Positions 598 through 63,392 of a DNA stretch of 64,000 nucleotides are shown piece after piece. Origin of the DNA: Klebsormidium nitens (Eukaryota > Plantae > Klebsormidiophyceae); the NCBI GenBank assembly GCA_000708835.1, contig DF236979.1, positions 186,001 to 250,000 of the forward strand, written 5' to 3'. Each line of letters begins with the position of its first letter. Position 1 is the first letter of the stretch. The position numbers and the translations under genes are program-made. Below the pieces are notes generated by a model. The model made no database searches. It saw nothing but the letters and a program-made list of their open reading frames with translations, and was not told the DNA's origin.

Positions 598-10983
<10,386 letters not shown>

Positions 10984-50300: not shown

Positions 50301-53300
50301 ACGTGCTGCTGGTGCGGGCAAACTGTCACAAGGTCATCCGGCTGTCTCGAGGAGTTCAGGTAAGTCACAAGCGATGAGACGTTTTGAAGTGTCTAGACTT
50401 TCTCTAAGCCTGAACCCTTTTCTTATTCCTTTCTCTTTGTAATTCGTTCTCTTTGTAACTCTGCGAGAAAGTCTATTCTCAGAGAAAGACAGCCCTGGTT
50501 GCTGGAAGGAATGTGGGCGGAGTGAGTGTGCTTGAAAAGTTGGGGTGGTGTGCAGTTGGAGGCTTGTTGCTGCACTGTTATCCATCAACGTCATTTACTG
50601 CTGATCATCAAAGAGGGCGTATTTAGACGCATCTGAATGACATGTCACAGGGCGACTGCTCAACAGGTCCCTCTGCTCTGAAGTCGCCGGAAGGCACATG
50701 TCTCGGTTTGTGTCTCTTAGCGAGAAAAACTGTGAAGCGGTGACCGATGTTGACGTTCACATCCGATCCGGTGACATGCCTAGTTTAAGCGTGCCCAAAA
50801 ACCTGTTACCAAGTTTCGTTGATGGTCTGCATTTGTCTTGTATCCACGTCGAAAAAATGTTTTCGTCCCCTGCAGTGGTTTTTCGACTCCGTGGTCTGCA
50901 ACGTGCACGGCGTCAGCCCCAACTTCTTAGACATCGGCGATCGCGTGCGCGAGCGTGCGCTTTCTCTCCTGGAGGACGGGTTCAGCAGCGAGGATGAGGT
51001 CAGCAGTGCGCGAATCCAGCCGCAGGCGGTGGAGGGATCCCTCTCGATCGCGCCGGAGGAACGTGCACAAGAGGGAAGGCAGCATGAAAGGTCCGAGGGG
51101 AATAACTTGCGGGAGCGGCGTGGGGTTATATGGAGCAAGGGGAATGAGCTACAATTGAACGGCAGGCCGGCGGTCGAACTGGTGAAGGATGTCAGCTTGT
51201 CGAGGTGGTTGAACTCTTCGGCTGAGAGTAGAGAGGAGCAATTTGACGAGGTAGCGGAGGCGGGTAAGAGTGGACAAGATTTGCAGTTGACACCAAGCGG
51301 CAAAAGTGAGGCGGAGCGGACGCCAACGTCGGTTCTGCATGGCCGAGTGTTTGAGGAGCGGGGAAGGAGGGGGGAAGTGGGGACTGCCAGTCCGAGCATC
51401 AGCGGTCGATCAGCGGGAGTTCCAGTGTCGGGAGAGCGACGGAGCAGGTCGCAGTTCTCCGGGGGCTGCTACTTTATTGGGCGAGCGATTTGGGGAAAGG
51501 GCTACCACGAGTTGTGTCAGCTTCTCAAGAAACAGAAAGAGGAGCTTGAGCTTCGTGCAGGAGAGTCAGAAGCGGGGTTTTCGGCGACCAAGGAAGGGGG
51601 ACAGGGCGCTTTCAGGTCGCCGAAACACAAGGTGGTGCAGCTAGAAGACTTGGACGGTCAGGCACTGCGCCCCGGGGGGGAGAAAGTCGACCCTGAGGGG
51701 GGGGCGGTTCCGCTGGTGCAGGAACGGGGGGGCGGCAGCACGTTCCGCCTCCTGAACCTGTGCATGCGAAGCAAGTTTCTGTGGCACCTGCAGACGATGT
51801 GGCTGAGGCGTCGGTACGGTGATCGTCTGAAATGGTTGGAACACGGGCGGCGCGCATTTTGCGCGGTGCAGGGCGGGGGCGAGAGGGCCCAGCCAGGGAA
51901 CCCCCCTGAAAGGGGGATGGGCCAGCGGGCCCCCCTGGAACGGGTGCATTCGGAGACTGGGGAGGTGAACAGCATAGTGGGATTGGACCGAGCGCCATGT
52001 GGGGGGGGCTGTGAACGATCAGAAGAAGCAAGGGGGGAAGCATCTGAGGAGGAGACTGGCGGCCCGTGTGGCGGGAAGAGTTTTGCAAATGGGGGTGTGT
52101 CTGAGAGAGGCGCTGCAGGGGGGGGTTTGGCAGACTTGGTGCACGTTGACTGCTATGGGACGGGGCCGCATGAGGGGGAGATTGAGGCGTTTGCGAAGGA
52201 GCACGCGCTTCCGCTGACGTTTCACGGGAGGATCGACCACAAGGAGCTCGTTCAGTACAAGGTAAGGGAAACGCGTGTCTCTGTTTTCTGTGGGTAGAGC
52301 AGGTTCAAATACTGTGTTACATGGCCTATCGTCTTGATGATGGGCCACAACGCTTACACGGAACGCCATAATTCCTGCTCCTGGGTTACATCTTCCTCCG
52401 AGCGATTGGTGGCTGCCTTGATTAGAGGTGCCTTTTGTGTTGCGCTTTGTCCGAGCTTGCAAAAAGACCCGCAGCTTCTCGTTCTGCTCATACTGTCGCC
52501 TTGGGAGCTTGCAGACCCGTGCTTCAATCTTCCAGGTTGTTGTTCTTAGAAACGGTAGAAGATCACCGTGTTCCATAGTCGTTGCTCACGTACTGAAGCG
52601 ACCTCTCGTTGTAGCAGCTCCCATGAGGGTGCAGAGCTTTTTCCACATCCCAAAAGCTAGTATACAGTATACAGATTTACTTGAACGCTGCTATCAGTGA
52701 CGTGGTGTAGCTCGCATTAGGGGGCGGAGCTTTCTTGGCTTCCCGAAAGCTAAGTATACAAGTTGACACCTCCAGGTATACGTCAACCCTGCCATCAGTG
52801 ACGTGGTGTGCACGGCGACCGCGGAGGCGCTGGCGATGGGCAAGTTTGCTGTGATTGCGGATCACAAGTCGAACGAGTTCTTCAAAGATAACTTCTCGGG
52901 CAACTGCATCACCTTCCCCTCGGACGACCCCGGTAAGGACTCCAACCAAAGCGCACGGATTATTGTCTGAATTCCTCTCAAATGACCGGACATTTCAAAG
53001 ATTTGATTTTGCACTGTTTACGCTGGTTAACCCTATCAGCAACGCACTCGCCTATAAATGAAACTTTCTGCTGCTGGCGCTTGTTTTTATTTCCGAACAC
53101 TATGTGCTCATCTGCGCTGGTGTCCGACTTTCGAGCAGTGGCTGGATTAACCGTCTTCGAAGTGTTACCATTACAATGAAGAGTCTGACATGCTCGTTGT
53201 ATGTCTCCACAGACGAGTTCCTGCGCTGCCTCCACTTCGCGCTGGCGCACGAGCCCGCACCGCTGACGGCAGAGCAGAGAAGGCTTCTGACTTGGGAAGC

Positions 53301-53337
53301 AGCGACCGAGCGTTTCATGCAAGCGGCTGGGTTGTAG
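47317..53337 (+). CDS. DGD: Digalactosyldiacylglycerol synthase-like GT4 glycosyltransferase with large insertions; exons 47317-47554 (tentative), 47896-48524, 49134-49253, 50021-50359, 50876-52261, 52776-52932, 53213-53337
   Basis: Motifs [88 protein letters not shown] and [10 protein letters not shown]. The 5' end is uncertain. Confidence 0.85.
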
Positions 53338-53614
53338 GCAGTCGAGTCCACAGGTGATTCAAAGTTACGGGTGGGTAAAAGGGCAAAGGTATATTCTTTG
53401 GTATGTATCAAGGGGCGGTGGTATAGCTGCATCAAAATGCCATTGTAGAAAGGTTTTATGGCCCTTTTCGTTATGATCAAGCCGCGCTGAGCAGAATCCT
53501 GTACAGATTCACGAAGATACATAGGTCGAACTTACGAATGTACTTGGTACCGGAGAAACCACAGTAGGTACGTTATAAAGGCATTCAATAATAACAAGCT
53601 CGCACATGGTTTAA

Positions 53615-54335
53615 GGTGGTAAGACGGTATTCTACAGTGGGAGCGCATTCAAAACCCTAAAACTTGATGTACACATCATGGATTCACATTCCGTTTTTTC
53701 GAGGTGGTTAGTGCTATTGAGAAGCATGTTTGGAAGCCCCTCGAACCATGATACAACATGCCAAAGCAGAACGAAGCACATGAGAAGTTGGCAAAATGTG
53801 CAAAACCCCCTCGGCAAACATTTTCGTAGGAATAAATCTGAAAGATAGAATCCGTCCGAAAGGGACGAAATGTTCATGGGGGCAAGCTGGGATGTCAAAA
53901 TCAATTTTTGTAGCCCATTCCTCCAGAGGGTGTACCAAATACCACCATGCTTTTCCAGAAAACCCTGAAAACTGCGCAAAACTGTTGTTTTCCGGAAAAG
54001 CATGGTGGTATTTGGTACACCCTCTGGAGGAATGGGCTACAAAAATTGTTTTTGACATCCCAGCTTGCCCCCATGAACATTTCGTCCCTTTCGGACGGAT
54101 TCTATCTCTCAGATTTATTCCTACGAAAATGTTTGCCGAGGGGGTTCTGCACATTTTGCCAACTTCTCATGTGCTTCGTTCTGCTTTGGCATGTTGTATC
54201 ATGGTTCGAGGGGCTTTCAAACATGCTACTCAATAGCACTAACCACCTCGAAAAAACGGAATGTGAATCCATGATGTGTACATCAAGTTTTAGGGTTTTG
54301 AATGTACTCCCACTTTAGAATACCGTCTTACCACC
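53615..54335. mobile_element. Foldback (near-palindromic) non-autonomous DNA transposon, 721 bp, flanked by TTAA
   Basis: Two inverted arms of about 345 bp with few mismatches around a short central spacer near 53960-53990. Ends are GGTGGTAAGACGGTATTCT...AGAATACCGTCTTACCACC. TTAA at 53611-53614 and 54336-54339. Confidence 0.88.
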
Positions 54336-55099
54336 TTAAGATTCGTTTTGATCTGCATTGACCCTCTGCATGGCCGGCTGGGTGCGAAATCTGCATGCCA
54401 TTTTGTATCGATCAGAAAAAGCTCAAACTGATGATTCTCGAAGGAAGTGTATCATGCATTGCGTCATGTTCGCACATATGGCTAAGGGCCGGCTGTAGTG
54501 ACTACTTTCAAGTCGTGACAACAACCAGAGTGCATGAGTAGATCATGTACCAACACATATGCATACGCGCGAAAGTACAGTAACATGTGAAAACAAATAC
54601 TACACGGACAGTTGGATCAAGTTCCAAATTATACGACATTTATTGAAACACGACATATGGCCCGACGTTGCTGGTGCTGCCATGGGCGGGTCAATTTGTG
54701 CTGCCAATGGTCAATATTTTGAGCACAAAACGCAATGACCGCTGTTACTGGCACTAACCTCTACAAAAATCGCATCAAAATCAGCAATGACATCCATCAC
54801 TCCTTCAATGCGCCGCATAGAATCGATGTCCGAATCTGGATAAGGGCTGCATGGAGCACTCTTATGATGTGCAATTGCACCATATCCGCTTTGCGCACAA
54901 TTGACATACCACAAAACCCTTAAAATGTTTTCAAAAGTATCTTATACCGAGCAGTAAGCCCACCTATGACTCTCCAATTTCCTCAGTGCAAGTCCTGAGC
55001 CATGACTCTTCTGAAAATTGCTTCACGAACCTGACCTTTCAATACTGACTGCCCCTGCAGCATTATTTAGAATCTCAATTACCCTTAGCTACAGCACTC

Positions 55100-58000
55100 C
55101 TAAGACGTTGCGCCCCACAGACTGCTCTCCTTGAGCGACTTCTCATTGATGCCGATGAGTGACTCGAAGAAGCCCATGAACGCAAAGGCGGCCAGCGGAG
55201 ACAGGTCCAAGTTTCCGACGACTGGGATGATGGACTTGAAGCTGTACGGCAAGAGGGCAAATGGATCAGCAGAGCTGAGAGCAACAAAGCAGTTGTGTCT
55301 ATCGGGCAGAGAAAAATGACGCCTAGACTTGTTGGTCGCTGTGAAGCATGCTCGATTGTCACGTTTGGGGTAGGCTATCACGAAGTGGGAATAGGCTATG
55401 GCGAAGGGAGTAGCAAGCAAGCGCCTATGGTTGCCCATTGCCCTTCTCTCATTTTCAGTTTCATGAATGGCTCGTTGGCATCACCGAAGGAGATGGAAGC
55501 TTTTTTATTGAGCGCCAAATTCTCAAGCAAAAGGGAGAGCAAAAAAGAAAAAAAGGGGCAAGAGTGAAACGAAGAACGCCGATCTCATCTTTGAAAAATA
55601 CCGCTTTCGAAATATGTGTTGACTCTCAAATCGTGGTCGGGGAGCTTAGAGACACACTACCCTTTCCGGCAAAAACTTCTGCAAGGGGATCAGTAGTAGA
55701 GACGGACAGCTACCAACAGCAGGGTACCAACGGCAGACGGCAAGAGATGGTGTCCACTCGTAAGGAATCTTTCTTTACACAACTCCTCCAATCAATCCCT
55801 TGAAGCCTCACTACTCTGAAGATTTATCTAGCAGATCTGTAGGAAAGGCGCAAGAAAACATCCGTTGGACTTGGTTTCGGACTGTAGCTCAGACACCCGG
55901 ACGACAAGCCATTGTCAAGTTTTTTTCCCAGTAGGGTCCACCAACTTGCTCCGTATTAGGGTTATCCCTCTAAATTTCCCAGTCTTCCAAAAGCGCCAAC
56001 GAACCGTGAATAAACTGGTGTTCTCTCAAGTTGCGCGCTTGTCGACCAATCCGGTCTGCAGTTATCCCTATGTTACAAACCATGCCGAATTCGATATCAT
56101 GCGCGCTCGGAAGCTTTTCCGTGGTTTCGGACAGGTTGAAAGGAAACCGCTCCGCCCAGTCAACCACGGTTACGCTCAGAATTGCTGAATGCTAAGAGAA
56201 AGAAGTCAGAAGCCTTTGTGAAGCTCACAGATTGAGGTAAGGGTCCGTCAGTTCCCGGGACGCCTTGAGCGGGTGCTTGTCCCAGGGCAGGTTAGGGAAC
56301 CAGGTTAGCACGATCCGGAGGAGAAGCAGCCCACGGAAGATGAAGAGCACCTGCGGTTAAGAGATAACCCTGGTCTGTTTCTTGGTTGAAGAAGCCATAA
56401 AAACACGGAGCATGGCAAGATTCTTGGAGCGAATGGAGTTGAAAAGCAACTTGACCGCAAAGGTGGGAGGATTTGTCACTGAATCTCGGGGCTAGATTTG
56501 AGGGCATGCTTCAGAAGCTCCGGAGGCAGGCAGGTGAGTATCTTCGACAAAAGCAGCGCCCATTGTATAACATTCATTTCCTAAAGGACAAAAGACTAAC
56601 ACTGAGGACCATGTCTTTGTTAGGCTGGATTATGACCGGACCCTGAATACCCGAAAAGGATTAACCAGACAAGCCTAGCAGTGCTCGGAAAAGTGACAGC
56701 CTATCTCTTCGCTCATGCAAAAATTGAACTCTATGCCTTGATACAATGAGAAACAGACTGCTTTCAAAACCGAGATAAGCAGCTGACACGTGATCAAGCA
56801 TCCGCTCATGGCAGGAACCCAAAGCTGATGGCGTCTCTTGCAGCAGTGGATTCAAAGAAACTCCTAACATTCCAACACGGCACAGCATTGAAAGTGAAAA
56901 AGAGAACTTCATAGCAGCAGACCGGGCTGAAATCGTGAAAGCTGACAAGAGGCGAAGTTTTTGGCTATGAGTTATCCAATGAGCCTCCTGATTGATTATT
57001 ACGTCCAGGGGGGAAAAAGAGGGTCGGTGCTTTCAACTACGGTCCATCAAGTCATTGTTCACTTGCTGACAAAGAATCGGGGCAGCTATCCTCACAAGCG
57101 GGGGTCAATGTGACGCTCACAGAAAGAAAAGACTGACGTGTTCATTTGAGCAGCATAGATTCCTTCGGAAGCTGGTGCTTCAAACAGAAGTCCCCGCAGA
57201 GCGCAACTCAGGAGTTCCTGTAAAAAGTCAAGCACTCCAACAGTGCATCACAATAGAACAAATAGAGGACCAATTGGGGCCACAACCTATTTGCCACTTT
57301 ATTACCCGCCACACTTCAAGCTGCAACAAGCGCGATGAACAAGTCTATCACGAGGACTTTGTCGGAATTACCAATGATATGAAACATAGGTAAACCGCAC
57401 GACTAACCTGCTCAGCATACACGAGACTGCAGGAAACTGCGTGTAGATCGCTCCCAGCCAAAAAAAAGAACTCCGTATGCACTCTGTTATTGTCCCTTTG
57501 AAAAGAATGCGAAAGTTTCTGGCGGAACCTCTAGTGTTTCAGCTACTTGATAACCCTTGTCATCAATGAGCTGCAGACACCTCCGCTAGACCAAAAAGAA
57601 GAACGTTCTGGTGCCTTTCTACTCGTTAGGCAAGCTAAAAAAGAAACAATCGCTTGGGTAAGACTGGCTATATCCCATGTCAATTGCTTCAGGACTGCAG
57701 TCACAAGCTCTGTGCCAACCATGCATACACACGAGGCCAAAGTCCGCAGCATTACCTTTCTCGGAAAAGTACCGGGACACAGAGAAGCCATCTCATAACA
57801 ACAAGGTGGTGCGCAATGCTGTCAAATTAAGGAGCTGCGCACCTGTTCTACCTTAACTATCTAGGCTCGCATAGAAAAGCTCTGTTGATCTCTGGGGAAA
57901 CCACACAACACACCAGTCTTCTGGAAAGAAGACAAACAAACAGACGCGACACTCTAAATGTCACAAAGGACACAGCAGTTGACAATTCCATCAGAGAAAC

Positions 58001-58587
58001 GGGGCACGCACCTGCTTCACTGACACCAGGAGCGTCATGGCAAAGTACATGATACCCCGGGACGTCTGGTTCCTCTGGTACCTACCACCGGAAGCCGCAA
58101 GCGCCGACGGCACCCCCACGACACCGCTAAGCACAATTGGGAGAGCCGCGAACGCGAAAGCGACCGCCATCCTCTTGGCGGCCGCGCCATTCTCCCCCCA
58201 CCATTGCTGCTTCATTGTCTGTCCGAGCGCAACCGCAGCGCCCGCGACAGTCGCCGCCAGCTTTGAAAGTGGAGCAGAGGGTTCGACAACTGGCTCAGCT
58301 TCTATAGGGGTTTGCGATGAAGTTTCTGAAGCTTCCACAGACTCTGCGCGAACCCCAGCACTCCGATGTGACGCCAAAGGGAGCGTTTTCTGTGCGCGGC
58401 GCGCCTGTTCTACGTGAGCTGCGAATTGGGAAGAAGGAGTCCTGAAGGGGAGGCGAAGTGGTGTTGCTTTTCTGCAGGGGAAGACTGGTAAAGCGAGCGC
58501 CCTGCACGGGCGTGTCTGCGGAGCGATGTGCGTCGATGCTCCAAACACCGAGGCAGCCCCTCTCTGCGCAAGGACAGTGGATGCCAT
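55100..58587 (-). CDS. YLMG: YGGT/YLMG-family plastid membrane protein; exons 58587-58082, 57426-57408 (putative 19-nt microexon), 56350-56229, 55241-55100
   Basis: LLRIVLTWFPNLPWDKHPLKASRELTDPYLNLFKSIIPVVGNLDLSPLAAF matches the YGGT signature. Transit-peptide-like N terminus. Confidence 0.85.
55414..55933 (+). pseudogene. LAGLIDADG homing-endonuclease-like reading frame (degenerate or spliced), antisense within YGGT intron 3
   Basis: FQFHEWLVGITEGDGSFFI at about 55453-55509 fits the LAGLIDADG helix motif. Downstream segments loosely fit the domain. No clear ATG. Confidence 0.6.
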
Positions 58588-58873
58588 GGTGAACGGCAGA
58601 CGGAGCTCTCGCGAGGAGCTCTTGAGCGCACGTCTTTGGAAGCCCTGGTGCGCACCTCTTCCCTGCCACTTGTCGAAGATTCGAGATTGATTTTGCAGGT
58701 CTGTTCTCAGGCACCAGCGATGCAAAACGGACAAAACTTGTGAACTCCTTTCGATTTTTCGGACGGCGGACGCTTACTTTCCGCTGAATCGGAAGGTACC
58801 GCGTAGAAGGGATAAGCGTACAGTGTGTACCCCGTAAGGCACCTGGCCAGGCAACCGGGCACTCGCTGTGACA

Positions 58874-61913: not shown

Positions 61914-63392
61914 ATGCCGGTTGTGAGCACGCACGTCTTCGTGAATCACAAGGGTGGTGTCGGCAAGTCCACCCTGTGCTATCATTTGGCGACAGCATAC
62001 GCAAAGAACCATCCCGACGAGAAAGTGCTCGTTCTGGACTTTACCGAGGTGAGTATTCATGGCGAAATTTTCTTTTTGCTCATTTCGAAAGAATCTTCTC
62101 GCAGCTTGTACTTTCTGCGTGGTAATATCGAGTACAAACAAAACGTGCGCAGGTTCATCAGTATGATATCGAAGGGAGAGTTTCCAGGTGTCACTTTCGA
62201 ATCCTTCGTGCATGAAGGTGGATTACCTTTCTTTTTGAAAGGATCTTGATAGGAGGTGACTCCGTTCCACCGACAACGTAAGAGTAAATACCAAGCAGAT
62301 ATTGATTTTGCTTCTCACATTGCTCCGTTTGACGTTGCTTCCGTATGGGTGGCAGCACGCTGCGATCACAGTCTGTTGCTCACTCTGCTTGAGTAGGCTC
62401 ACCTAGGCCGCGTGGTAACTTTAGCGGGGAACCGAGAAAAGTGATTCGAAGTTTTACCAAAACGCGAAATCTTACCTAGCCAGCACAATAGATTAAGCAG
62501 GATTGCCAGAGACTTCTTTGAACTTTATTTTACCAGCACACTATCTGCCAATGTAGGTGGGAGATGTGTCCGAGTTCTTTCTGGGAGGCGCTCACAACCA
62601 GCGTGGCAAGCGCCGCCAGAGAGCCATAGCTCCTGTCGTCAGCGCGACGAGCTACCTCCTGAAGGCGCTAGCGCAAGCCATTCCAAAGTAGGTCTCCCGG
62701 TTGTGGCCCATGGTTCTGCTTTTCTGTGCAAGCTAGGACGGAAGCAGAATCCCTCAGTTTGTGAGAGTAGTCTTTGTCTTGATTAAGGCCCTGGTAAACG
62801 GATAAGACCATACAAAGTAATCAACTTTAGAATCTGCCAGTCTTGTTAATTGCAACTTCACGATTGCATTCGCTTAGCGCCAGATCCTCTCTTGGTTTAG
62901 AACGTCAGCTTTGGAAGTTTGAGCTAGCTAAGGCGTGTTCGAGTTTACCTGGTGAATCACATGGCTCAGTATACCTACTCCTCACCCTTTCGGCCTTAGC
63001 GTAGAGTCCAAACGAAGAAAGACGTGTCCAAGAATTCGCGAGAGTCCAGTTTCGGAAAGGCTGGGTCCAGGCAGGATTAGGGCGGTAAAACATTTATTAT
63101 GTTCTTTGTTCCCTGCTCTCTGTAGGTTGCAACGTGCAGACTTTCATACCGTTCAGCAAAGCTCGTCTTCGAAGGCTGACCGGAGCGAATAGAAAGTAAG
63201 ACAGTCCACAATGTGAAAGCTCTCATTTCCGACCCTTTGCAGGTTCCAGCTCACGGACGACGTGCAGGAGGATGAGAAGGTCCTGGCCGCGCTCCTAGGG
63301 GCGCTGCCGCAGCCCAAGAAGGCGAGCAGCGGTGACCCCCCCCCGGGGCCCTTCTCGCAGGAAATCGCCTTCTCGCAAGAGATTACTGACAG
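61914..63392 (+). CDS. ParA/Soj-family ATPase with spliceosomal introns, partial (exons 61914-62048, 62557-62687, 63243-63392; continues beyond window; possible upstream exon from 61532)
   Basis: Deviant Walker A VFVNHKGGVGKST, then YAKNHPDEKVLVLDFTE|VGDVSEFFLGG. GT-AG junctions are phase-consistent. Confidence 0.8.

Follow-up and report, generated by a model that had tools for sequence, protein, structure and literature searches.

An open reading frame with a LAGLIDADG motif lies antisense within a spliceosomal intron of a nuclear gene of Klebsormidium nitens, and the question raised by this locus is whether the frame is a nested gene, a piece of organellar or foreign DNA, or a chance resemblance. 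The locus is situated in a 64,000-nt stretch of DNA, referred to here as the window, from the K. nitens draft genome (GCA_000708835.1; PMC12472361). A first-pass annotation, made from the letters of the window, had listed as possible explanations an insertion of organellar or viral origin, a homing element in decay and a nested gene.

The host gene, a member of the YGGT family, occupies 55100-58651 of the minus strand. RNA contigs delimit exon 1 (58008-58651), exon 2 (56229-56346) and a last exon of about 54860-55241, the coding part of which is 55103-55241, with the stop codon at 55100-55102. The joints in these contigs, 55241->56229 and 56346->58008, have CT..AC borders on the plus strand, corresponding to GT..AG in the direction of the gene, and the first of them is present in RNA contigs of four runs from four studies. 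In a Pfam search conducted one exon at a time, exon 2 (E = 5.7e-6) and the coding part of the last exon (E = 0.0045) matched PF02325 (YGGT), with profile positions 4-41 and 43-69 represented on either side of the intron. Because the RNA joint is present and the YGGT profile positions continue across the flanking exons, the 987-nt GT..AG interval at 55242-56228 on the minus strand is a real spliceosomal intron; it is, however, the second and last of the RNA-supported three-exon model, and not intron 3 as it had been numbered. RNA depth is 80-1008 over exons and junctions as against 4-12 over this intron. Contigs from separate studies run from one exon through the entire intron into the next exon, unbroken and with zero differences, which places the content of the intron in the nucleus, between two YGGT exons.

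Two minor observations concern the flanks of the gene. At the 5' end of exon 1 (58650-58651) the RNA contigs of runs X1 and X2 stop in two differing loose ends of 25-32 nt, which have no counterpart anywhere in the window; alternative sequence upstream, trans-joining of contigs and artefacts of assembly are possible explanations. Downstream of YGGT, in an untranscribed spacer, a near-perfect long hairpin of approximately 170-200 nt is found at 53876-54074; it has no coverage in the RNA contigs, and its scores for plant miRNA-precursor families, on both strands, are under the gathering thresholds (MIR860, 69 bits versus 89). It looks like a MITE-type palindrome rather than a miRNA gene.

On the plus strand, antisense to YGGT, the intron contains a stop-free frame of 129 codons (55414-55800; translation start QASAYGCPLPFSHFQFHEWLVGITEGDGSFFIERQILKQKGEQKRKKGARVKRRTPISSLKNTAFEICVD) that includes CPLPFSHFQFHEWLVGITEGDGSFFIERQ. 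The strings read from this region by the first-pass annotation are indeed there: the 17-aa motif FHEWLVGITEGDGSFFI at 55459-55509, AFEICVD..VGELRDTLPF downstream of it in the same frame, the splice-like GTAAGG at 55760 and CTGTAG at 55838-55843, and an alternative frame with NLLRIRVIPLNFPVFQKRQ. The LAGLIDADG motif with its conserved acidic residue is WLVGITEGDGSF at 55468-55503. A generic LAGLIDADG regular expression has a single match in the window, and for the strict form of the pattern the analytic expectation is about 0.2 per 104 Mb. Two other candidates suggested by this region were rejected. An organellar LSU rRNA fragment, suggested by "GTTATCCCTA", received no support from an Rfam search of 53000-58500, in which no rRNA was detected. 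A retrocopy with a poly(A) tail, to which the A-rich tract after the motif might have pointed, was discarded because this tract encodes the lysine-rich insertion of a mitochondrial ORF.

That ORF was reached through protein comparisons. A word-based search with the 121-aa ORF gave no match, the related proteins having 2-3.5 times its length, and an exhaustive search of 1.84 billion representatives gave a single one (P0001, E = 2.6e-5). P0001 is a double LAGLIDADG_1 protein of 333 aa, and its gene is flanked by exons of cox1 on a mitochondrial contig from a metagenome. Closer Klebsormidium ORFs are members of the 50% cluster of P0001, and surfaced when P0001 was used as the query and its relatives were compared locally. 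One subgroup of these relatives (P0005-P0014) has, as in the window, both the motif and the lysine-rich stretch behind it. The closest named protein, found in the 90%-identity cluster of P0009, is AJF36700.1, annotated as 'hypothetical protein [Klebsormidium flaccidum]' (P0074); 48/50 residues are identical, the differences being Y>H and E>G, and its counterpart of the 17-aa motif is FYEWLVGITEGDGSFFI. In a local BLASTP comparison with P0014 the translation of the window segment was 90% identical over 50 residues.

At the DNA level, 146 nt of the plus strand (55431-55576, piece 1) are a copy of part of the LAGLIDADG_1 ORF in a group I intron of mitochondrial cox1. Piece 1 spans 48 codons (C7-R54 of the frame), comprises the first LAGLIDADG motif and the lysine-rich loop, and represents approximately 12% of an endonuclease ORF of about 407-426 codons. 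It is identical at 143/146 positions (98%; E = 1e-66) to a segment of a mitochondrial contig that lies inside the P0014 gene (L003:10114-10259), and directly outside 55431-55576 the identity falls to random on both sides; both edges were reproduced against two other Klebsormidium-type mitochondrial contigs, L012 (89%) and L016 (93%/80%). The donor is represented in these comparisons by a congener's contig (98%) and the K. flaccidum protein, rather than by DNA of the same strain. The window as a whole has a GC content of approximately 51% and the mitochondrial DNA one of 42%, whereas 55450-55600 dips to 38-41%. Of the explanations put forward, the organellar insertion is the one borne out by the near-identical match to Klebsormidium-type mitochondrial DNA.

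The source sequence is truly mitochondrial: the ORF is placed between cox1 exons, on contigs with nad, cob, cox2/3, atp, ccmF and rps/rpl genes and tRNAs. As ccmF, atp4, atp8, a ribosomal-protein (rps/rpl) cluster and a standard trnW(cca) are present, these mitochondrial contigs are of the streptophyte type, and they encode the same nad7 protein, residue for residue, as scaffold DF238763.1 from assembly GCA_000708835.1. The comparison covered 68.9 of the 72.5 kb of the mitochondrial contig and 21 kb of the 106-kb K. nitens scaffold DF238763.1, with cox1 outside these 21 kb. According to Turmel et al. (2013; PMC3814193), the mtDNA of Klebsormidium has nine introns and encodes a DNA methyltransferase (orf209); among the mitochondrial scaffold and contigs compared here, L010 and L022 have a PF00145 DNA-methylase ORF. 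As a side observation from L022:14346-16092 (mitochondrial contig_14844), L023:10013-11275 and L010:14436-14936, Klebsormidium-type mitochondrial genomes have a C-5 DNA methylase ORF adjoining an ORF with an Eco47II-type restriction-endonuclease domain, in effect a restriction-modification-like pair; for the K. nitens scaffold, of which 21 kb were compared, the methylase was the only one of the two to be called.

A second fragment begins at the first base after piece 1 and in the same orientation. This 39-nt piece (55577-55615, plus strand) matches the reverse-transcriptase/maturase ORF of a cox1 group II intron, with 34/39 positions (87%) identical to L004:7993-8031, inside an 836-aa RVT_1/Intron_maturas2 ORF, and all five differences being C>T or G>A. 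Its source lies 10.7 kb upstream of the source of piece 1 in the mitochondrial contig, again in the same orientation. Piece 2 is short, and it draws its support from its E value (1e-6 with the intron as query, 7e-5 with the whole window) together with its exact adjacency to piece 1. Pieces 1 and 2 were the only two matches of the intron in 334 kb of comparison DNA, which included the 21 kb of the 106-kb K. nitens scaffold; beyond 55431-55615 the intron gave no mitochondrial match in this DNA and no Pfam match, although additional small pieces peculiar to the K. nitens mitochondrial genome may be present there. A 27-nt match at 56191-56217 is colinear and involves the mitochondrial ORF at its 3' end; with E = 0.04 it is best taken as chance. 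We conclude that the last intron of the K. nitens nuclear YGGT gene almost certainly carries a non-functional, 185-bp mosaic NUMT, in which two non-adjacent mitochondrial fragments are joined. Only codons 7-67 of the open frame are of mitochondrial derivation, and the remainder of 55414-55800 is intron sequence that is open by chance.

The explanation that would give this sequence a function is a nuclear LAGLIDADG gene, nested or domesticated, that runs antisense to YGGT within its intron and is itself interrupted by a small intron. The frame is open for 129 codons with the motif intact, GT and AG strings are available at 55760 and 55842, and language-model features associated the region with LAGLIDADG clusters at 0.87, a result of lead level only. 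However, the LAGLIDADG homology stops after 48 codons, exactly where the identity with mitochondrial DNA ends. Pfam gave no match at E <= 10 for the five plus-strand frames of the intron, PF00961, PF03161 and PF14528 included, and single-sequence AlphaFold2 gave no confident fold (mean pLDDT 38). The HMM and structure-prediction checks that had been proposed thus spoke against a domain: the family HMM aligned 24 residues and hhalign, at 98% probability, 31 columns, and the sole match of phmmer in the PDB was to the motif region of I-OnuI (E = 0.15). No complete alpha-beta-beta-alpha-beta-beta-alpha domain of approximately 100 aa is present and, with 48 of 407-426 codons, the intron encodes neither two domains nor one complete domain that could dimerise, and none of its frames contains the second motif, which in relatives reads WLAGFTEADGSF. 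The 48-codon piece is thus predicted to be incapable of folding into an endonuclease domain. The later stretches read as further strands and helices of the domain (AFEICVD.., IRWTWF.. and NLLRIRV..) are not LAGLIDADG sequence, because the mitochondrial homology stops at 55615. Nor does the locus resemble an expressible unit, whether a start codon with a transcript of its own or a host group I intron or intein: there is no in-frame ATG ahead of the motif, and Rfam detected no group I intron in 53000-58500. RNA depth in the YGGT intron is flat and on par with that of the neighbouring intron (about 8), as would be expected of pre-mRNA; the intergenic interval 53868-54787 has a depth of 0. The proposed plus-strand intron finds no support either, as no 55759->55842 joint occurs in the RNA contigs, which are strandless and blind to rare forms. 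Both differences from the mitochondrial protein are amino-acid changes. The insert is in all likelihood transcribed only within the YGGT pre-mRNA, antisense, and spliced out, although a faint antisense transcript is remotely possible. With a truncated ORF, no start codon and intron-level RNA, we consider a nested gene exceedingly improbable, and a homing element that decayed in place is likewise unsupported.

That a LAGLIDADG-like motif arose by accident in a random open frame might have been suspected from the empty Pfam and first word-based searches and from the PDB match, which is weak and limited to the motif; long stop-free runs are, moreover, common in the window (n = 70 of at least 129 codons). 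This idea can be dismissed altogether in view of the 146 nt of near-identity with mitochondrial DNA, the absence of the motif pattern from all of 300 shuffles, and the E value of 5e-10 obtained, among all 1718 stop-free pieces of the window, with a profile of cox1-intron LAGLIDADG ORFs built from relatives of P0001. We also regard as very unlikely that the segment was acquired from a virus, a fungus or another foreign donor, or that it is a chimera of assembly or contamination. Fungi too have cox1-intron LAGLIDADG ORFs of the same subfamily, and the DNA comparison was made with the cox1 of a congener and not that of the strain itself. Nevertheless, Klebsormidium-type mitochondrial genomes and the K. 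flaccidum protein (90-96% aa identity) match far better than anything else, fungal relatives being 35-40% identical over the ORF, and the lysine-rich insertion after the motif, which is specific to the Klebsormidium group, is found in the window. The viral insertion that had been suggested, with giant viruses to be checked, was not substantiated: neither the ORF nor a degenerate pattern of the motif found a match in scans of viral and metagenome contigs. A chimera is opposed by RNA contigs of four studies in which the insert is contiguous with nuclear exons.

Our current working hypothesis, drawn from general knowledge of NUMTs, is that fragments of mitochondrial DNA would have escaped into the nucleus, that two cox1-intron fragments of 146 and 39 nt would have been ligated end to end, and that the product would have been captured by end-joining repair of a chromosome break in the YGGT intron. 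The motif is intact because the transfer is recent (two amino-acid differences in 48 codons) and not through use. Since both fragments come from cox1 intron ORFs, in the same orientation and 10.7 kb apart, it is also conceivable that the insert was formed from RNA, a group II intron reverse transcriptase having switched template between cox1 intron RNAs before the cDNA was captured in the nucleus. We hold this to be very unlikely; cox1 plus its introns accounts for at least 15 kb of the 72.5 kb of the congener contig, so that two random DNA fragments could both fall in cox1.

The mosaic insert, understood in this way as a copy of mitochondrial DNA, is an ordinary organelle-to-nucleus DNA scrap and another instance of a well-known phenomenon. 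Like other NUMTs, it is a short nuclear stretch near-identical to mitochondrial DNA, with sharp boundaries, intronic and non-coding in its new place, and like mosaic NUMTs it consists of two non-contiguous mitochondrial fragments arranged head to tail. No essential difference separates it from these; its source is a pair of intron-encoded cox1 ORFs rather than a standard mitochondrial gene, and it is for this reason that the insert mimics a homing-endonuclease gene. With the cox1 group I intron LAGLIDADG_1 endonucleases (AJF36700.1 and I-OnuI, for which a structure has been solved) it shares 48 codons homologous to the N-terminus, including the first helix with its acidic residue. Unlike them, it has no beta-sheet DNA-binding core, no second domain or motif and no start codon, and it is nuclear, antisense in a spliceosomal intron and without a group I ribozyme by Rfam. 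The OTP51-type splicing factors are a further case of LAGLIDADG-type sequence located in the nucleus, yet these are full-length, expressed and organelle-targeted, with complete domains, whereas the insert is a 48-codon scrap without expression of its own. A search of the literature turned up no publication on Klebsormidium NUMTs.

Recognition of the insert for what it is removes an attractive false lead, the 'nuclear nested homing endonuclease', and intact-looking organellar motifs in nuclear introns of K. nitens should be compared with the organelle genomes first. To a minor extent, it also documents recent, mosaic transfer of mitochondrial DNA to the nucleus in a streptophyte alga. A census of NUMTs across the K. 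nitens genome may be worthwhile, and useful for masking, because this one window of 64 kb appears, from sequence comparison, to hold at least two more small mitochondrial-like scraps besides the 185-bp insert. The 63 nt at 5106-5168 match, at 92-94% identity, the spacer that immediately precedes mitochondrial nad7 in K. nitens scaffold DF238763.1 and in related mitochondrial contigs; directly behind them, at 5170-5254, comes a tRNA-Tyr(gta) of 85 nt whose variable arm is long (organelle or bacterial type); the mitochondrial loci have no tRNA at the corresponding position, and 5106-5254 is probably a second mosaic NUMT. The 35 nt at 62251-62285 recur with 100% identity in the mitochondrial scaffold of K. 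nitens, DF238763.1 (L010:20066-20100), and may be a third, tiny NUMT or an element shared by the two genomes.
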